In this document: positions 758-58,961 of the stretch, piece after piece
Layout: every line of letters starts with the position of its first letter
How positions within the stretch are numbered: the first letter of the stretch is position 1
NCBI RefSeq assembly: GCF_006345805.1
Contig: NC_043013.1
Span: 5,518,001-5,582,000, forward strand
Reading direction: 5' to 3'
DNA length: 64,000 bases
DNA from: Octopus sinensis
Lineage: Eukaryota
Program-made: the position numbers and the translations under genes
Notes under the pieces: model-generated
Seen by the model: only the letters and a program-made list of their open reading frames with translations
What the model was told of the DNA's origin: nothing
Databases searched by the model: none

Positions 758-1816
758 GAGAGAAGTGTGTGTATGTACATTATATATGTAGAGGGAGATA
801 GACACGTTTATGTGCGTCTAGCTGTATGTATGATTGTATGTATGTATGCGTGTTGGTATATGTGTGTATATAAGGGGATGAGAACTATAATTATGTGCAT
901 CTGGTTTTAGAAATGCATGGCACATTTTTAAATGACTATTGTCTGTACTTTGTACCAATTGCCAGAGTACAATTGCAAGCCATCACTATTGTCAGACTGG
1001 CAATGACTTATATATATATATAAAGGTATTGTGTTAGGAAAGCGGGAGGGAGAGTAGACACTGCATTAGATATGGTTACACTAACCTTGGTATTAGTTTT
1101 GAGGCATTTTACTAGTTAGACATTGAAAACGGCGTTGTTGTCGTCCGTCTTGTGCTGGACTTTATTACAAGAAATCGGTGAAATAAATATACGAATGTCT
1201 GTCCATCTCTTTTCATTCTCATATATATATATCAGATAGAGAGAGAGAGAGATCGAACATATATAGTTCGATGGTTTTTACGTACGAAAACATTGTAGAA
1301 CTTAATATTCAGTTGAAGAGAAAGGAAGTTTGTACACACACACACACACATACACAGCCATCCGCCTTTCTCTCTCTCACACACATACACACCAACACTC
1401 AGCCATGTGTGTATCATGCTTAATGCAGATACATCGCGAAAAAAAAAAAAAATTAACTGCGGTATTCGTTCAGCGGTAATATCCATTGTAGACGCGATGT
1501 GTTAAAAAATGCAAGTATATTGACAACGGACGAAAATCGTCCGACAGTGGCTGATGAAAATGCTAAATGCGCATTTCTGCGTCTTTGAGCTTCGTCAATA
1601 GCATGTACTCTCTGTCAAACTCATGCCAAGACAAAATCCGTTGTTATTGATATTGTAAAAACAGTTATCGATAAAATCACTGAGGTTGGAATTAGCCAAC
1701 TGGCTGAGTAATAAATAATATCCGTTATGCGCAATAGATGTATGATTCACACGTGGCTACTTTAATCTAATACTGCCTCTGCTGCATATAATGTATTATA
1801 TATATATATATATATA

Positions 1817-3815: not shown

Positions 3816-4680
3816 GCGCACGCACGCACACACAAACACATACAATAGATATATTAACAGGACAAATTTAGCTATTTCTCCGTAGATTACAAAATTGAAA
3901 GAAATCGACGAACGACCTCAGTCGATTTTCGAATCCTATTGGATTCTCATCTGAGGCGTCTTCGCGAACTTGACCAATTCCAGAGACACGAGCAGCCAAT
4001 CTGTTTACATGCTCACCAAACCCAGTAGTTAGAGAAAACTTGGGCTACTAGTTTGCATAACGTAAGTTTTGACGGCTTCTTTCAGTTTCCGACTACCAAA
4101 TTCACTCACAAGACTTTAGTCGTACCTGAGCCACACAGTAAAAGAATATAAGAGGCACCTGGACTCAGGGTGCCACACAGTGGCACTGAACCCGAAACCA
4201 CAGTGTTGGGAAGCAAACTTCTAACCACACAACCACGCCTGCACCTCAATTCGTTAACTTTCAAACATTCCATTGTGTTCGCTTTCTATTTCAGCTGATA
4301 TATCTCAGTTATGGCGTATCCCCCGCTGATGTTTTCTCACAGAAGAAACATGCGTTTTTTAAAGCAGTCTTTAGCAGGGCTGTTGTTGTTGTTTGTGAAG
4401 TTGCTTCTGACGTATATGATACGTCACATCATTAGAAAACGGGTAAACACATTGTTGATGGAGCAATTGATGTATGTGTATGCATAAAAATTCTTGACAT
4501 TTGTAAGATAATTCTTAGAGATGTACTTTCTCAAGAAGGTCCAGAGTTTGCCAGCTGTACCGGTGTTTATATATATATATATATATATATAGTTCAACTT
4601 TACAGAAAACAAAAGACGAAAACAGGCGAGGGAACAATAAGCAGGTGTATTAGTTTGACACTCGACAAGAATGGAAAAAT

Positions 4681-8392: not shown

Positions 8393-8540
8393 ATGAAGTT
8401 AACTCGGATTCTGTTCACATATGCCCGGCGTATTGCCGCCGTAAAGAGTAAGAAATTCGTCGAATTTGATCCCGTCTTTGAGAGATATGCATCTTTTAAT
8501 CCGTCCCCGCTGTCTTTGGAGAAGTTTATGGAATTTGGAG
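8393..8540 (+). CDS. Pdk: Pyruvate dehydrogenase kinase, mitochondrial, coding exon 1
   Basis: ATG at 8393 gives MKLTRILFTYARRIAAVKSKKFVEFDPVFERYASFNPSPLSLEKFMEFG. The N-terminus is basic and acid-free (presequence-like) and is followed by the PDK motif F(N/S)PSPLS..F..FG. Donor GAG|GTAACG at 8540/8541, phase 1. Confidence 0.93.
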
Positions 8541-8696
8541 GTAACGAGAATTCTTTTGTGTCTTTGAAAAAAAAAAATTGTATTACACACACACACGCAA
8601 ATACACATACACACACACAAATGTGCAGCACCCCACGATTTTGTAACTTAATGAAATTTTTCACAAAATACCTTTCAGCTGGGGTAGATTCCGAGG

Positions 8697-12335: not shown

Positions 12336-13104
12336 TAACACCGTCTCCGTAAAAATCGCTGAGCTTGCATCAAAATATGAAATCGTTATTGTTGTTTATA
12401 TTATTTATTCAAGTACTTGAGGGTGAGGGCGAGATCTGAGGCTGTAGAAAATAATATTTACCTAAGACGATACGCTGTAGACCTCGTGGTTGTGATGTGT
12501 TTCTAAGCCATTCATCTCAACCCTACACTGTACACACGCACGCGCACCTCACTACCCTCCATCTTCTATGGGGCGCACCAACACCATCTTATCTCTCTAT
12601 GCTCCATCAACACTAAATCAGACATTCTAATTCGTAGCAGTCTTTTGTCATGTCTGCTTTTGTGTGCGTGCATACATTTATGTTGAAATGGGTGCAGACG
12701 TGGCCAAGTAGTTAAAACCACTTTGTTTCATAATAACTAGGTCTCGCGTTCTGTCGTGCGGTGCGGCGGGCGTCTTAGGCAGATATTTCCCCCTTCGTAT
12801 CTTTTTCACTATATCCTGCGGTTGATCCGAGTCCTGTCAGTGAAATTGAAATTGGGTGGACAGAAACTGTGTGGAAGTTCGCCGCATGGCCTGTACCTAT
12901 AATTTCGAAGGTTCAGCTTTGTTACCATGCCATGGAGATTCTGTCTGAGGATTACATTAAAAGCATACGTGCCAATGGAACACTCAGCCACTTTCATAAT
13001 AAATCGATATGTAGCAAGTTTAGGAGATCAAACAACTTGAAGACTCATCATGGAAACTAACGAAAGGCTTGGTGGCAGGCAATGAGTAAAGAAATGCTAC
13101 ACGC

Positions 13105-16568: not shown

Positions 16569-16951
16569 TAGGAGTGGTTGTGTGGTAAATAGCTTGCTTA
16601 CCAACCACATGGTTCCGGGTGGCACCTTGGACAAGCGTCTTCTACTATAGCCTAGGGCCGACCAAAGCCTTGTGAGTGGATTTGGTTGACAGAAACTGAA
16701 GAGAAGCCCGTCGTATATATATATAGGTATATATATATGTGTGTGTGTATGCTTGTGTCTGCGTTTGTCCCCCCAACATCGCTTGACAACCGATGCTGGT
16801 GTGTTTACGTCCCCGTAACTTAGCGGTTCGGCAAAAGAGACCAATAGAATAAGTACTAAGCTTACAAAGAACAAGTCCTGGGGTCGAGTTGCTCGACTAA
16901 AGGCGGTGCTCCAGCATGGCCGCAGTCAAATGACTGAAACAAGTAAAAGAG
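16569..16951 (+). mobile_element. SINE family A, near consensus
   Basis: GGAGTGGTTGTGTGGTAA...GACTGAAACAAGTAAAAGAG. Confidence 0.9.
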
Positions 16952-19734: not shown

Positions 19735-19935
19735 ATTCTTTTATTTGTTTCAGTTATTTGATCGCTGCCATGCTGGAGCACCGCCTTTAGTCGAGCAAAT
19801 CGACCCCAGGACTTACTCTTTGTAAGCCTAGTACTTATTCTATCGGTCTCTTTTGCCGAACCGCTAAGTTACGGGGACGTAAACAGACCAGCATCGATTG
19901 TCAAGCGATGTTGGGGGACAAATACAGACACACAA
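19735..19935 (-). mobile_element. SINE family A, 3' half
   Basis: TTTCAGTTATTTGATCGCTGCCATGCTGGAGCACCGCC... Confidence 0.8.
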
Positions 19936-20020
19936 ACATATATACATATATATATATAATAGATATACCTACATTATATATATATATATATATATGAAGA
20001 AGCCCAGAGAGAGAGAGAGT

Positions 20021-20397
20021 GAGTGGTTGTATACTGTCAACATAACGTGACAGTCCCGTAAAGGGAATTACACCACCGCTGTTTAGCCCTAGGAAGCATC
20101 GACGCTTCCTGTTGGCTTTGACACATTTCCCGTGTCCTTATATTTGCGAGGGCTTGGCAAGTATCTCAACAAGCAGGAATTGCTACTCTGGACTGATGAC
20201 GGGCAAGACCCAGAAACATGCATGTCTTCAGGTGTGAATCCTAGTTGGTGGGGGTGCTTGCCTCCCCTTCGCAAATATAAGGACACAGGAAATGTGTCAA
20301 AGTCGACAGGATGCGTCGATGCTTCCTAGGGCTAAATAGCGGTGGTGTAATTCCCTTTACGGGACTGTCACGTTATGTTGACAGTATACAACCACTC
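20021..20397. mobile_element. Fold-back element with 141 bp inverted arms and a central hammerhead motif
   Basis: 20021-20161 is the reverse complement of 20257-20397: first 60 nt identical, 5 mismatches in the first ~129 nt. Flanked by (GA)n/(TC)n and then (TA)n on both sides. Confidence 0.85.
20187..20232 (+). ncRNA. Minimal type-I hammerhead ribozyme motif (Penelope/retrozyme-like)
   Basis: UCUGGA-CUGAUGA-C-GGG(CAAGA)CCC-A-GAAAC-AUGCAU-GUC-UUCAGG. Stem I 6 bp (2 G.U), intact core boxes, palindromic stem III ACAUGCAUGU, GUC triplet with predicted cut after 20226. One C.A mismatch at the base of stem II. Confidence 0.75.
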
Positions 20398-20591
20398 TCT
20401 CTCTCTCTCTCTCCATATATATATGGGAGGGTGCGTGGCCGGGTGGTGCATTGTGTTCTTGAGCAAACCACTTCATCTCACGCTGCTCTGCGATGCCACC
20501 CGATGCGTGGTACACAATGCACCATTTCAGACAACGTCGATTTGATCGAGAGTGAGCCATTGTGTGGCACGAATTTTTGATCACTATAAAC

Positions 20592-20680
20592 CAGGAGTGG
20601 GGGAACTTTTTAGTGCGGCGGCGGAAAATTTCCAAAAATAGAAAAAAAGAAAAAAAAAGGTCCGCAGGCGGATCACAAGT
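20592..20680 (+). mobile_element. Possible 5' end of a hAT-type element
   Basis: Begins CAGGAGTGGGGAAC, resembling CAGGGGTGGGGAAC hAT termini. No matching right end found. Confidence 0.35.
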
Positions 20681-25749: not shown

Positions 25750-25950
25750 CTCTTCTACTTGTTTCAGTCATTTGACTGTGGCCATGCTGGAGCACCGCCT
25801 TTAGTCGAGCAAATCGACCCCGGCACTTATTCTTTGTAAGCCCAGTACTTATTCTATCGACCTCTTTGGCCGAACCGCTAAGTGACGGTGACGTAAACAC
25901 ACCAGCATCGGTTGTCAAGCAATGCTAGGGGGACAAACACAGACACACAA

Positions 25951-26003
<53 letters not shown>

Positions 26004-26156
26004 TACGACAGGCTTCTTTCAGTTTCCGTCTACTAAATCCACTCACAAGGCTTTGGTCGGCCCGGGGCTATAACAGAAGACACTTGCTCAAGATGCCACG
26101 CAGTGGGACTGAACCCGGAACCATGTGGTTGGTTAGTAAGCTACTTACCACACAGC
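25750..26156 (-). mobile_element. SINE family A, young, CpG retained
   Basis: Near-consensus copy. Confidence 0.9.
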
Positions 26157-31806: not shown

Positions 31807-31948
31807 GTAGTCAGAATGCGTGTGAAAGGACTTCATTTGAATTTCTGCGTAAAGAATTGCCTGTTAGGCTTGCCAATATAATGAAGGAGATCAACCTTCT
31901 GCCAGACAATCTTCTACAAATGCCTTCAGTGGCCATGGTACAGAGCTG
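31807..31948 (+). CDS. Pdk: Pyruvate dehydrogenase kinase, coding exon 2 (142 nt)
   Basis: Branch-like CTAAT near 31775, pyrimidine tract and acceptor TTGACAG|GT. G+GT joins in phase to give [48 protein letters not shown], the conserved [19 protein letters not shown] block. Donor CTG|GTGAGT at 31948/31949, phase 2. Confidence 0.96.
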
Positions 31949-36768: not shown

Positions 36769-36810
36769 ACTTATACATGTTTCAGTCTTGTTCTGATTTC
36801 ATCAGTGAGT
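36769..36810 (-). ncRNA. Decayed minimal hammerhead ribozyme motif
   Basis: Minus strand ACUCA-CUGAUGA-AAUC(AGAACAA)GACU-GAAAC-AU-GUA-UAAGU. Core intact, palindromic ACAUGU. Two apparent G>A changes each break one pair, in stems I and II. Confidence 0.55.
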
Positions 36811-37455: not shown

Positions 37456-37852
37456 CTCTCTTTTACTCTTTTACTTGTTTCAGTCATTTGACTGCGGCCA
37501 TGCTGGAGCACCGCCTTTAGTCGAGCAAATTGACCCCGGGACTTATTCTTTGTAAGCCCAGTACTTATTCTATCGGTCTCTTTTGCCGAACCGCTAAGTG
37601 ACGGGGACGTAAACACACCAGCATCGGTTGTCAAGCAATGCTAGAGGGACAAACACAGACACACAAACATATACACACACATACATATGTATATATACAT
37701 ATATACGACAGGCTTCTTTCAGTTTCCGTCTACCAAATCCACTCACAAGGCTTTGGTCAGCTATAGCAGAAGACACTTGCCCAAGATGCCACGAAGTGGG
37801 ACTGAACCCGGAACCATGTGGTTGGTAAGCAAGCTACTTACCACACAGCCAC
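37455..37852 (-). mobile_element. SINE family A, young
   Basis: Near-consensus copy, close to 25750-26156. Confidence 0.9.
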
Positions 37853-38804: not shown

Positions 38805-38850
38805 ATTTCAGTACCGGTTTCGGTCATTTTGAGACCTTTTCAACTGTAAC
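38805..38850 (-). ncRNA. Minimal type-I hammerhead ribozyme motif, U3-A8 core variant
   Basis: Minus strand GUUACAG-UUGAAAA-GGUC(UCAAAAU)GACC-GAAAC-CG-GUA-CUGAAAU. Perfect 4 bp stem II, palindromic stem III ACCGGU, GUA triplet, and the C3-G8 core pair replaced by U3-A8. Confidence 0.72.
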
Positions 38851-45370: not shown

Positions 45371-45469
45371 TACAGAGTTAGATACTATCTGTCTTTGTGG
45401 CCGATAGACAGACAGACAGACGGATAGATAGATAGACCTCTTTTCTTTCTCCCCCTCTCTGTCTCTCTA

Positions 45470-45521
45470 TATATGTATATATACACACACACACACTCGC
45501 ACAATATATATATAGTTATAC

Positions 45522-45569
<48 letters not shown>

Positions 45570-45571
45570 GC

Positions 45572-45604
<33 letters not shown>

Positions 45605-46130
45605 ATATATATATATACACATATATACATACATATGTATATACATATGTATATATATATACACATATATACATACATATGTATATACATATGTATATAT
45701 ATATATACACATATATACATACATATGTATATACATATGTATATATATATATACATATATATATATATGCATATATATATATACATATATACATACACAT
45801 ATATGTATATATATATATACATATATATATATGCACACACACATAAAGGGGGAGAAATGCACATACATACATTCACACGTATCATAGTGACAGAAAGACA
45901 ATGAGTGAAAACACACACACACACATATCTGGCACCAGGCTTCTTTTATGTTTTCTGTATTATTAAATTTCATATAGTAATTAGTTTTTATTCATTGATT
46001 TCTATAGTACATGTATGTATATGTGTATATGGATGTGTATATGTGTATATGGATGTGTATATGTGTATATGGATGTGTATATGTGTATATGGATGTGTAT
46101 ATGTGTATATGGATGTGTATATGTACGAAT
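45470..46130. repeat. (TA/CA)n array and 20 bp tandem repeat
   Basis: Visible directly; (TGTGTATATGGATGTGTATA)n at ~46020-46125. Confidence 0.9.
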
Positions 46131-46414
46131 AAACGTGTGTGCACGCTTACACCTACACACGCTGCACGTATGCTACCATCTTCATTTCTTAAGCCAGTTC
46201 TTTACAAATCATTCGATGATTTTGTTTCTGTTGTTGTTGTTCTTATTCTTATTCTTCTTCACTTTCCTTCTTCACTTTCCTTCTTCACTTTCCTTCTTTG
46301 CTCTCATTCTTTCCTGCATTTCATTCTTCCTTGCTCTTCTTCTGTCCTTCTTCTCCATTCTTCATTCTGTTCTATAACGTCTCTGTTTGTTACTTTCAAA
46401 CGAAATCATTGCGG

Positions 46415-46790
46415 GCATTGTTGTTGTTGTTGCTGTTGTTGTTGTTGCTGCTGCTGCTCTTCTTCTTCTTCGTCTTCTTCGTCTTTTTCTTCTTCTTCTT
46501 CATCGTCTTGTTCTTTGTCTTGTTGTTCTTCTTCTTCGTCTTGTTGTTGTTGTTCTTCTTCTTCGTCTTCTTCTTCCTATTCTTCTTCGTCTTCGTCTTC
46601 TTCTTCGTCTTCTTTTTCCTCTTCTTCTTCTTCTTCTTCGTCTTCTTCGTCTTCTTTTTCCTCTTCTTCTTCTTCGTCTTCGTCTTCTTCTTCCTATTCT
46701 TCTTTGTCTTCTTCGTCTTCGTCTTCTTCTCCTCCTCATCCTCCTTCTTCCTCTCCACCTCCTTCCTCTCCACCTCTTCCTTCTTGTGTC
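46415..46790. repeat. (GTT)n/(CTT)n pyrimidine-rich array
   Basis: Visible directly. Confidence 0.92.
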
Positions 46791-47544
46791 CTCCTTAGGA
46801 GTGAATTAGATTCTTTTTTCTCCAAATAGAAATCTCAGAGGCAACAAGTAGCTGGAACAAAGCTGTCAATCAATATAAATGTGTGTATATGTGCAAATCT
46901 GTGTATGTATGTATGCGTGTGTGTGTGTAGGGGGGGGTTGTATGTATGGTTGTATGCATGCATATGTGTAATTGTATGAGTAGCTGTCTAACTGTATATG
47001 GTTGTAGTAGTGTCTTCGTGGCCATGTGTATGTTGGCTGTGCATATGTTTTTATGTAACCATATACGTGCTCATTTGTACCACGTGCGCGCGTGTGTGTG
47101 TGTGTGTGAAGAAACCATTCCTGCTAGCTAATAACCTGATTATCATTATAATGGTAACGATAATGTAGGCAGGTCAGTTCCTGCTATCTGTTCGAGAGGT
47201 AATTGGAGATATTTCATTAATATTGCTAATGGGTGTGTCAATTACAACCACCACTGCCACCACCACCACCCTCACAACCACTGTTGCTGCCACCAGCTCC
47301 CTAATATACCATCACACATTCATTATCTTTTTCTATTTTTCTTTCTAAAAGATTCTGCATGATGTTTTGTTGTGTATTGAATATATACACACACACATCT
47401 CTCTCTTTCTCTGTGTGTGTGTGTGTGTGTGTAATCATGTATGTCTATATAATCATATATGTATATATAGTCCTATAAATACACACACACACACACACAC
47501 ACATACATATGTCATATACATATATATGCATTTATGCATATATG

Positions 47545-50100: not shown

Positions 50101-51425
50101 CATCATCATCATCATCGTTTAACGTCCGCTTTCCATGCTAGCATGGGTTGGACGGTTCAACTGGGGTCTGGCAAGCCCGAAGGCTGCACCAGGCCAGTCA
50201 GATCTGGCAGTGTTTCTACAGCTGGATGCCCTTCCTAACGCCAACCACTCCGAGAGTGTAGTGGGTGATTTTATGTGCCACCGACACAGGTGCCAGACGA
50301 GGCTGGCAGACGGCCACGCTCGGATGGTGTTTTTTATGTGCCACCGACACAGGTGCCAGACGAGGCTGGCTGACGGCCACGCTCGGATGGTGTTTTCTTA
50401 TGTGTCACCGACACAGGTGCCAGACGGGGTTGGCGGACGGCCACGCTCGGATGGTGTTTGTTATGTGCCCTCAGCACGGAGGCCAGTCGTTGCGGTACTG
50501 GCTACGATCACGTTCGGATGGTTTTCTTATGTGCCACCGGCACTGGTACCACAAGGATACAAATTCCATTGATGTTCATCTATTTTGATTTGGTTCGATT
50601 TGATTTGATTTGATTTGATTCGATTCTCACTTGCCTCAACAGGTCTTCACAAGTGTCACAAGAAGGAAGGTATGCACAGGTGGACTGACTACGTCCCAGG
50701 TAGGGGCCACGGATTATGGCTTCACTAGTCTTGCCGGGTCTTCTCACGCACAGCATACTTCCATAGGTCTCGGTCTCTAGTCATTTCCATGGTGAGACCT
50801 AACGTCCGAAGGTCGTGCTTCACCACCTTGTCCCAGGTTTTCCTGGGTCTACCTCTTCCACGGGTTCCCTCAACTGCTAGGGATTGGCACTTTCTCACAC
50901 ACCTATCTTCATCCATTCTCGCCACATGACCATACCAGCGCAATCGTCTCTCTTGCACACAACAACTGATGCTTCTTAGGTACAACATTTCTCTCAAGGT
51001 ACTAACGCTCTGTCGAGTAAGTACACTGACATTACACATCCATCGGAGCATACTGGCTTCGTTCCTCACAAGCTTACGCATGTCCTCAGCAGTCACGGCC
51101 CATGTTTCACTGCCATGTAGCATAGCTGTTCGTACACATGCATCATACAGTCTGCCTTTTACTCTGAGCGAGAGGCCTTTAGTCACCAGCAGAGGTAAGA
51201 GCTCCCTAAACTTTGCCCAGGCTATTCTTATTCTAGCAGTTACACTTTCAGCGCACCCGCCCCCACTACAGACTTGGTCACCTAGATAGCAGAAGCTATC
51301 AACTACTTCTAGTTTTTCCCCCCGGAAAGTGACGGAAGTTGTTTTCTGCAGATTTTCGGAGGTCAATGCTCCCGAGCATCTGCCACATACAAAAACTATC
51401 TTCCCAGTTAGCCTACCTTTGACAT
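50101..51425 (-). mobile_element. 5'-truncated RTE-clade LINE: C-terminal ORF, 3' UTR and (GAT)n tail
   Basis: Stop-free frame 51423-50725 (233 aa): ...VFVCGRCSG...LEVVDSFCYLGD...RTAMLHGSETW...RRLRWYGHVARM...RGRGRPRKTW. The 3' UTR has ~62 bp tandem units (50265-50560) and ends CGGACGTTAAAC(GAT)n. Confidence 0.93.
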
Positions 51426-57275: not shown

Positions 57276-57544
57276 ACAATTTTCTTGATGCAGGAAGCTT
57301 TTCCAAATCTGCGCCATCTTGACTCATTTGCATAAATGTATTAATCTAGGACAGACCAATTAAGAAAGAAAAAACCCTAGTGTTTTAATGAAATAATTAA
57401 GTATAGCTTGGACAGATTATCCCCCAATGTTTCTTTATATCATGTCACATGTTGAAGCTGGTTGTTATCCCATTGTCATGTGATAGAGGACAATAACACC
57501 CCCTCCCAAGCCCCCTGACTTTGCTCTGTAATGTTCTTATAGCC

Positions 57545-57781
57545 AGTGTGTGTGTGTGTGTCTATGTGTACGTCTGCATATGTGTATATTCATATTTGAG
57601 TGTGTGTGTATTTGTCTATTTTTATGTGTGTGGAAATGTATATGTATCTGTGTATGTATGTATGTATGTATATATGTCTGTATATATATATGTATGTATG
57701 TATGTATATATATATATTATATGTATGTATGTATATATATATATATGTATGTATGTATATATATATATATATGTATGTATG

Positions 57782-57812
<31 letters not shown>

Positions 57813-57851
57813 GTATGTATATATATATATATATGTATGTATGTATATATA

Positions 57852-57884
<33 letters not shown>

Positions 57885-58096
57885 ATATATATATGTATGT
57901 ATGTATGTATATATATATGTATGTATGTATGTATATATATATATGTATGTATGTATGTATATATATATATGTATGTATGTATGTATGTATATATATATAT
58001 GTATGTATGTATGTATATATATATATGTATGTATGTATGTATTATATATATATATGTATGTATGTATGTATATATATATGTATGTATGTATGTATA

Positions 58097-58129
<33 letters not shown>

Positions 58130-58282
58130 ATATATATATGTATGTATGTATGTATGTATATGTATATATGTATGTATATGTATATATGTATGTATATGTA
58201 TATATGTATGTATATATGTGTATGTATATATGTATGTATATATGTATGTATGTATATATGTATGTATGTATATATGTATGTA

Positions 58283-58318
<36 letters not shown>

Positions 58319-58396
58319 TGTATATATGTATGTATGTATGTATGTATATATGTATGTATATATGTATGTATATATGTATGTATGTATATATGTATG

Positions 58397-58430
<34 letters not shown>

Positions 58431-58432
58431 TG

Positions 58433-58463
<31 letters not shown>

Positions 58464-58640
58464 ATATGTATGTATATATGTATGTATGTATATATGTATG
58501 TATATATGTATGTATATATGTATGTATATATATATATGTATATATATGCATGTATATATGTGTGTGTGTATATATATGTATGTGTGTATCTATGTCTGTA
58601 TGTATCTGTGTGTACGTGTCTCTTCATTTGTGTCTGTTTA
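57545..58640. repeat. ~1.1 kb (TATG/TA)n microsatellite
   Basis: Visible directly; source of the 370-400 aa Y/I/C/V/M ORFs. Confidence 0.95.
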
Positions 58641-58961
58641 TGTGAGTGTTTGTGTGTATATGTTAAGATGTGTGACTTGATCAGCCATTGTGTGAGTGTG
58701 AGTAAATAACCTAGTTTGTGTGCCGTGTTATTATATAAGGGGCCACTAAGTATTGTGTGTGTGTGTGTGTACATGTATATATGTGTCTGTACACGCATGT
58801 CTGTGTGTGTGTGTGATTATTTACTGGAAGAAGTTTGTCAAGTGGAATAATTTTATTTTATTTATTTTTTCACTGAGAGTGTTTTGGACAGGAACCAGAA
58901 CAGAGAAGTCTTGGGTTTCATTCTTGCGTCGTGTGATAGCATTGACAGTTGTGAGTGTGTT

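Follow-up and report, generated by a model that had tools for sequence, protein, structure and literature searches.

A short motif in the first intron of the octopus gene Pdk is, as judged from its sequence, a hammerhead of authentic architecture and of the sort carried by animal retroelements. It occupies positions 20187-20232 of the window, i.e., of the whole stretch of 64,000 nucleotides of Octopus sinensis DNA that was analyzed here. We consider it probable that this motif represents a genuine transposon-borne hammerhead of type I, which resides on a non-coding, 407-bp insertion of the Penelope-like or retrozyme kind and is ordinary cargo in the Pdk intron. The features on which this view is based are compiled in Table 1.

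Table 1. Positions of the hammerhead motifs, of the insertion with its surroundings and of the Pdk exons and intron in the 64-kb window.
Feature	Position	Strand	Remarks
Second hammerhead-like motif	1560-1604	-	R1 score 23.5 bits, second in the window
Pdk first coding exon 1a (MKLTRIL...EFG)	8393-8540	+	Donor GTAACG at 8541
Pdk first intron	8541-31806		23,266 nt; motif almost exactly mid-intron
(TA)n tract at the 3' end of SINE copy 19787-19997	19938-19995		Left side of the insertion target
AAGAAGCCC, nine extra bases	19997-20005		Left of the element only
Hairpin-forming insertion	20006-20412		407 bp; hammerhead at the apex
Left inverted arm, begins with (AG)n	20006-20152	-	Differs from the right arm at 6 of 147 nt
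Unique central domain, 113 nt	20153-20265	+	Hammerhead, 5' UAC bulge, U1.7; helix I prolonged by an imperfect closing stem with G·U pairs
Type-I hammerhead motif	20187-20232	+	46 bases; sequence read, own descriptor scan, R1 full-length match at 29.4 bits
Right arm, ends in (CT)n	20266-20412	+	
(AT)5 immediately right of the element	20414-20423		Other half of the split (TA)n target
Pdk exon 2	31807-31948	+	Acceptor ACAG, AG at 31805-06
Third hammerhead-like motif	36769-36810	-	R1 score 23.3 bits; CUGAUGA ... GAAAC ... ACAUGU

On the + strand the motif reads TCTGGA CTGATGA CGGG CAAGA CCCA GAA ACA TGCA TGT C / TTCAGG, where the slash marks the predicted cleavage site. The boxes, the GUC triplet, the 6-bp stem I and the 3-bp stem III with its palindromic UGCA loop, all of which had been proposed in the sequence-only reading of this DNA, were found again base for base. 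The CUGAUGA box corresponds to 20193-20199, the GAAAC box to 20213-20217 and the GUC triplet to 20224-20226. With C17 at 20226, the scissile bond is predicted at 20226/20227, and a 5'-OH end would fall at 20227. Helix I comprises 6 bp (20187-92 with 20227-32), two of the six pairs being G·U. In helix II (20200-03 with 20209-12) a C·A apposition is followed by three G-C pairs, and the helix is capped by loop 2, CAAGA (20204-08). GAAA (20213-16) leads into helix III, which consists of 3 bp (20216-18 with 20223-25) around the UGCA loop. Helix III and its loop together, ACAUGCAUGU, form a perfect palindrome of 10 nt, and a palindromic helix III is the property that allows hammerhead motifs to pair as dimers. 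The expected layout of three helices, of which helix I is open and the other two are capped, is present, with 6 bp in helix I, 3 bp and a mismatch in helix II, and 3 bp in helix III. Moreover, the catalytic core C3 U4 G5 A6 N7 G8 A9 / G12 A13 A14 / A15.1-U16.1 / H17 is complete (20193-99, 20213-15, 20216/20225 and 20226). The sole irregular position is C20200 (10.1) opposite A20212 (11.1), in agreement with the earlier statement that C10.1·A11.1 is the only defect. The G10.1-C11.1 pair beside the core does not occur in its usual register, which is taken by C20200·A20212, and a G-C pair is found one step further outward.

The statistical standing of the motif was assessed with two approaches. 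A type-I hammerhead descriptor of our own, run on both strands of the 64-kb window, returned 20187-20232 as the single site on either strand. Among 600 simulated 64-kb windows a relaxed descriptor gave four matches, none of which (0/600) had a 6-bp helix I, and for the canonical dimensions of animal type-I hammerheads the expectation is ~2e-5 per window, as estimated from 4 million simulated CUGAUGA contexts. The octopus site also shares with verified ribozymes several features that go beyond the descriptor, namely a UAC bulge at 20184-86 (C2.7), U1.7 at 20233, an A closing loop 2 and a closing stem past the bulge. C2.7 in the UAC bulge, U1.7 and the closing A of loop 2, which the coral and axolotl motifs also have, are candidates for a contact between loops 1 and 2. 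Furthermore, a covariance model, here called R1, was made from an alignment of four bench-verified retrozyme hammerheads from coral, mussel and two axolotl families (Suppl. Table 2, PMC7229834), and the window was searched with filters off. The top score of 29.4 bits (E ~2e-6) belongs to 20187-20232, which is matched end to end. In the control, the 67-kb Pdk locus of Argonauta hians, the R1 maximum was 14.8 bits and no full-length match was obtained.

Rfam 15 reported no hammerhead family (RF00163, RF02275, RF02277 and others) in the whole window at the gathering score or in segments of 601 nt and 81 nt at E<=10, and its HH9/HH10 models did not match the octopus motif in the whole window, the 601 nt or the 81 nt. 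The two tools thus disagree on the region 20170-20250, where Rfam 15 is silent at E<=10 and the four-sequence model assigns 29.4 bits to the same 46 nt. The silence of Rfam was first read as strong counter-evidence, but it was given less weight because the independent R1 model scored so high. Hence, the curated type-I models may tend to miss variants in which helix III is short and the base of helix II is mismatched. Collectively, a chance origin of the motif is very unlikely.

The C·A apposition at the base of helix II deserves attention, because the sequence-only reading had suggested that it could be explained by CpG decay from CCCG to CCCA. This assumption is unneeded and also disfavoured, since the ancestral pair would then have been C10.1-G11.1, whereas the conserved pair has the opposite order, G10.1-C11.1 (PMC4209133). 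In an alternative reading, an N·A mismatch is followed by a canonical G-C pair, which may be a trait of the lineage instead of the result of CpG decay. The same arrangement recurs at 1560-1604 on the - strand, where A·A is followed by G-C. In the axolotl hammerhead HHR_Amex2, U·U and then G-C are found at the base of helix II, and this ribozyme is still active, with 22% self-cleavage of the monomer within one hour and efficient cleavage of the dimer (PMC7229834). In the light of the motif at 1560-1604 and the HHR_Amex2 precedent, the seeming defect may be characteristic of the lineage. If a mismatch plus G-C at the base of helix II is indeed a family trait, it would represent a natural variant at a position that is usually treated as invariant.

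The predicted folding of the motif does not separate active from inactive candidates. Its minimum-free-energy (MFE) fold differs from the hammerhead fold, with a gap of 7.1 kcal/mol in the nearest-neighbour calculation, and in this MFE fold the CUGAUG box pairs with CAUGCAUGUC and thereby prolongs the long hairpin. Among active ribozymes, the corresponding gap between hammerhead and MFE folds amounts to 7.4 kcal/mol for mussel, 3.6 kcal/mol for coral and 2.3 kcal/mol for axolotl. Since the value of the active mussel ribozyme is close to that of octopus, the MFE-gap test does not discriminate.

The hammerhead is embedded in an inverted-repeat insertion. Overall, its arms extend over 176 nt at 89%; the outer 147 nt are ~96% identical and the inner 29 nt loosely similar. 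The near-perfect arms end 34 nt short of the motif, hence the helices of the motif are not by-products of the arms. Between the arms, mismatches of the G·U and the C·A type number 4 vs 1, which is too few for significance. Considered as RNA, the element (48% GC) is 90% paired at -0.77 kcal/mol per nt, whereas four published retrozymes reach 66-71% pairing and -0.21 to -0.41 kcal/mol per nt with the same folding measure. The + strand is predicted to fold more stably than the - strand, both for the whole element (-323 vs -298 kcal/mol) and for the central domain (-40.1 vs -27.1 kcal/mol), and it has 10 G·U pairs vs 4 on the - strand.

Searches for relatives and for hallmarks of mobility gave mainly negative results. 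A second copy of the element was found neither in the window (blastn) nor by exact-pattern scans of metagenome contigs and prokaryote genome contigs, and a 78-aa open frame across the element had no homologue in a search of protein space. The window contains no tandem array of the unit, no ORF for an RT or a GIY-YIG endonuclease was found in or beside the element, and no poly-A is present at it. A symmetrical target-site duplication was not found; there are only the nine bases AAGAAGCCC on the left side. The surroundings are rich in repeats. The hammerhead element sits inside the (TA)n tail of one copy of a SINE family that ends in (TA)n and has at least 15 copies in the 64 kb (among them 19787-19997, 25801-26008, 37517-37704 and 16713-16900). 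A different SINE-like repeat adjoins the element on the right (20425-20660). Very long TA/CA compound microsatellites and a long low-complexity tract were noticed at 57521-58800 and 45467-46830. They account for spurious ORFs of 270-400 aa, which occupy several frames of either strand. Within the Pdk pre-mRNA, the transcribed element would provide about 190 bp of almost perfect dsRNA, which is a plausible substrate for ADAR or Dicer; octopus is known for heavy RNA editing.

Two further hammerhead-like motifs were recorded by R1 in the window. The one at 1560-1604 (- strand) has the sequence AUGCUA UUGACGA AGCU CAAAGA CGCA GAAA UGCGCAU U UAGCAU. It shows U instead of C3, an A·A apposition and then G-C where helix II begins, a CAAAGA loop and a palindromic helix III, and it shares the UAC bulge and U1.7 with the motif at 20187-20232. 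It is located upstream of exon 1a in antisense orientation to Pdk, and its flanks are unrelated to the 407-bp element. The one at 36769-36810 (- strand) has A17, an A-U pair at 10.1/11.1 and a poor helix I, and lies antisense in Pdk intron 2, where it adjoins a (TG/TA)n tract. Two other sites on the - strand, 3915-3957 and 38805-38850, look by eye like decayed hammerheads and were not counted, their scores of 14.7 and 13.8 bits being no better than the best one in Argonauta. The former combines a GAAUCC/GGAUUC helix II with a perfect helix I of 6 bp but is without C3U4. Apart from these motifs, a 213-aa ORF at 50725-51366 (- strand) has similarity to the C-terminal region of a LINE reverse transcriptase. 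This ORF and two others had no Pfam match at E<=0.01, no exact product of the LINE-like ORF was present in a public gene collection, and exact look-ups of two window ORFs gave no match.

The genomic context was clarified with a PDK sequence, which in a tblastn search identified two coding exons on the + strand of the window. Both are 100% identical to the Octopus vulgaris/sinensis pyruvate dehydrogenase (acetyl-transferring) kinase, mitochondrial, the gene of which spans 135.5 kb in assembly GCA_951406725.2. As exons 1a and 2 are on the + strand and the motif lies between them, the earlier claim that it is on the transcribed strand of Pdk intron 1 was confirmed. Octopus Pdk has two alternative first coding exons that give isoforms beginning with MKLTRIL (exon 1a) or MRFSRR (exon 1b), and exon 1a alone is in the window. 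In Argonauta both first exons are present (1001-1105 / 12600-12755 of its locus), 11.5 kb apart and with the MRFSRR exon upstream. By synteny with Argonauta, exon 1b of Octopus would likewise be situated upstream of the window, which means that the motif lies in sense orientation within the first intron of every Pdk isoform.

The intron between exons 1a and 2 measures 23.3 kb in Octopus vs 7.3 kb in Argonauta. This size difference is consistent with repeat insertions, and many SINE copies are inside the Octopus intron. Neither the 407-bp element nor, according to R1, a hammerhead left any trace in the homologous intron or elsewhere in the Pdk gene of Argonauta hians. Conservation at the orthologous intron position is therefore not seen against this species, the sole one compared. 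Hence, the proposal of a hammerhead on the sense strand of a Pdk intron stands as far as the motif and its orientation are concerned, whereas its implied specificity for Pdk does not, because the motif is cargo of a 407-bp repeat insertion that is absent from Argonauta.

Repeat-borne type-I hammerheads with a short helix III, which can act as dimers through a palindromic helix III, are represented by Schistosoma Sm-alpha, newt satellite 2 and cricket pDo500. The Schistosoma ribozyme also has a UAC bulge beside its 6-bp helix I, as in the octopus motif. These hammerheads occur many times in cis, within arrays of satellite or SINE-like repeats, whereas the octopus motif has no same-strand partner in the window. 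Most metazoan hammerheads are of type I; their helices I and II have 6 and 4 bp, respectively, and a small palindromic loop caps their short helix III (PMC4209133). The octopus motif shows exactly these proportions. The hammerheads of the metazoan non-LTR retrozymes (PMC7229834) have the same topology and dimensions as the octopus motif. For example, the coral motif ACUGCA CUGAUGA GGCC AGAAA GGCC GAAAC AGUACUGUC/UGCAGU compares with UCUGGA CUGAUGA CGGG CAAGA CCCA GAAAC AUGCAUGUC/UUCAGG in octopus.

Further traits are common to the non-LTR retrozymes and the octopus element, namely the palindromic helix III and a non-coding unit of ~400 nt with self-paired RNA. Retrozyme units measure 170-400 bp and are self-paired (PMC7229834), and the trait of a non-coding, low-GC and highly self-paired unit is found here with 407 nt, 48% GC and 90% pairing. 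A helix II that starts with a mismatch and continues with G-C is shared with the active axolotl HHR_Amex2, although the mismatch is U·U there and C·A in octopus. On the other hand, non-LTR retrozymes occur as tandem repeats of 170-400 bp, while the octopus element is a solo copy. It is far more perfectly self-complementary than the published retrozymes, and C·A takes the position 10.1/11.1, where retrozyme hammerheads have G-C or U·U.

Penelope-like elements (PLEs) harbour hammerheads in their pseudo-LTRs (pLTRs; PMC8557442, PMC4209133), with which the octopus motif shares a location near the end of the element as well as one unpaired nucleotide that separates A9 from the G-C pair. It differs from PLE hammerheads in an extra A between C11.1 and G12 and in its canonical proportions, whereas in the PLE 'min-HHRs' helix II is usually long (6-8 bp) and helix III rudimentary or absent. 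Moreover, PLEs carry an RT/GIY-YIG ORF, which the octopus element lacks. The amniote hammerheads HH9 (RECK), HH10 (CTCL/C10orf118) and DTNB resemble the octopus motif in that they are of type I and lie, in sense orientation, within introns of protein-coding genes (PMC6155905). They are thought to be derived from retroelements and have been kept across birds and mammals (PMC6155905), in contrast to the octopus motif, which is absent from Argonauta and looks recent.

Regarding the origin of the insertion, the mode in which PLEs integrate offers a suitable model. PLE insertions often include an inverted 5'-truncated copy that generates an inverted repeat, frequently bear a short tail at one end only and favour microsatellite targets including (TA)n (PMC8557442). 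All these features have a counterpart in the octopus element, with its inverted arms, which would include an inverted 5'-truncated partner, the bases AAGAAGCCC as a one-sided short tail on the left and (TA)n on both sides. In O. vulgaris, PLEs are among six TE orders, with families that were scored as recently active (PMC13282606), and it has been argued that animal retrozymes derive from PLE pLTRs (2026 preprint, 10.64898/2026.07.22.740005). The assignment of the carrier to PLEs or retrozymes is drawn by analogy, because no RT/endonuclease ORF or tandem unit is adjacent, and the element would be a non-autonomous or truncated PLE derivative at best. Before reverse transcription of the source element, its hammerhead would have cut unit-length RNAs out of multimeric or pLTR transcripts. 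In one retro-insertion event, a forward copy (centre and right arm) could then have become joined to an inverted 5'-truncated copy (left arm). The product would have entered the (TA)n tail of the SINE in the first Pdk intron, the sense orientation of the ribozyme being due to chance. The arm divergence of ~4% suggests an insertion age of a few million years, with ~6 My as a rough minimum on the clock of PMC13282606, in which a JC value of 0.09 corresponds to ~25 My.

Other explanations are conceivable. The motif could be a look-alike without ribozyme descent, in which the palindrome apex supplies helices I and II and the boxes are accidental. The pairing of the CUGAUG box with CAUGCAUGUC in the MFE fold, by which the long hairpin is continued, and the silence of Rfam would fit this idea, and by extrapolation a genome of ~2.7 Gb would give roughly one chance match to the canonical descriptor. 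However, we give it little credence, because the R1 score of 29.4 bits is far from the 14.8-bit maximum of the control, two further motifs of 23 bits exist in the same 64 kb, and canonical features that were not selected for are present, i.e., the UAC/C2.7 bulge, U1.7, a loop 2 ending in A and the 10-nt palindromic helix III. An artefact of the palindrome was rejected as the main reading, since the near-perfect arms halt 34 nt from the motif, the mussel hammerhead has a like MFE gap, and the motif matches published ribozymes feature by feature. It is also unlikely, though worth serious consideration, that the insertion is a DNA-level foldback or MITE-type transposon, or a local inverted duplication, with a hammerhead relic, instead of a PLE/retrozyme retro-insertion. 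Terminal inverted repeats of 147 nt with ~96% identity and 90% pairing, which are unlike published retrozymes, would fit such an origin, as would the lack of a tandem unit, RT or poly-A. The target is TA-rich, which is also typical of Tc1/mariner-derived MITEs. MITEs and Tc1-Mariner elements have been annotated in O. vulgaris (PMC13282606). However, no symmetrical target-site duplication accompanies the element, which has the nine extra bases AAGAAGCCC at its left side alone, and a defined terminal motif is lacking, the ends being (AG)n/(CT)n. Microsatellite insertions with such an inverted structure and a one-sided tail have been described for PLEs (PMC8557442), and the bias in G·U pairs together with the higher stability of the + strand hints at a history at the RNA level.

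A different question is whether the ribozyme has been recruited by its host gene. A domesticated intronic ribozyme similar to HH9/HH10, which would cut nascent Pdk pre-mRNA and tune its splicing or output, would agree with the intact catalytic core, with the sense orientation and with the central position in the 23-kb first intron that both alternative first exons have in common. The conserved sense-strand intronic hammerheads in RECK, CTCL and DTNB are a precedent (PMC6155905). However, such a role is hardly credible in view of the absence of element and hammerhead from the homologous Argonauta intron and gene, of the ~4% arm divergence, which points to a recent insertion, and of surroundings that are obvious repeat debris. 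Moreover, introns cut by a hammerhead are still spliced in vivo through exon tethering, according to the summary of Dye et al. (2006) in PMC2995048, and here the products would remain base-paired through ~180 bp. For the latter two reasons, the earlier suggestion that cleavage could affect Pdk splicing or output found no support.

For the preferred reading as retroelement cargo, one may envisage that the intronic RNA snaps into a hairpin of about 190 bp, the apex of which can adopt the hammerhead fold. Cleavage at the locus would be slow, if it occurs, because helix II begins with a mismatch, helices II and III have only 3 bp each and there is no further copy in cis with which a dimer could form; R1 revealed no same-strand partner motif in the window, i.e., within 20 kb upstream or 44 kb downstream. 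Since helix I continues into the duplex of ~180 bp, the two halves would probably stay together and religation would be favoured. With products tethered in this manner and hammerhead-cut introns being spliced, an influence on Pdk mRNA is improbable, and the expected effect is nil or slight. A bolder scenario assumes an active variant of the octopus lineage with N·A between the core and the G-C pair, as seen at two sites in the window. The Pdk copy would nick the pre-mRNA and, via the 180-bp clamp, serve as a reversible switch between cleavage and religation or give access to dsRNA-processing enzymes, thus influencing Pdk isoform output; we regard this as a long shot.

Taken together, the hammerhead looks like retroelement cargo rather than a device for the control of Pdk. 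Hammerheads of animal retroelements are present in thousands per genome, hence one more copy is no surprise. What is new is the canonical octopus copy, while the kind itself, animal retroelement hammerheads, is already known. The present analysis documents canonical type-I hammerhead motifs in Octopus, and a recent paper on repeat annotation in O. vulgaris mentions no ribozymes. In Xenopus, retrozymes have been reported to be depleted from introns (2026 preprint). In this regard, tolerated sense copies such as the solo copy in Pdk show which level of activity is harmless.
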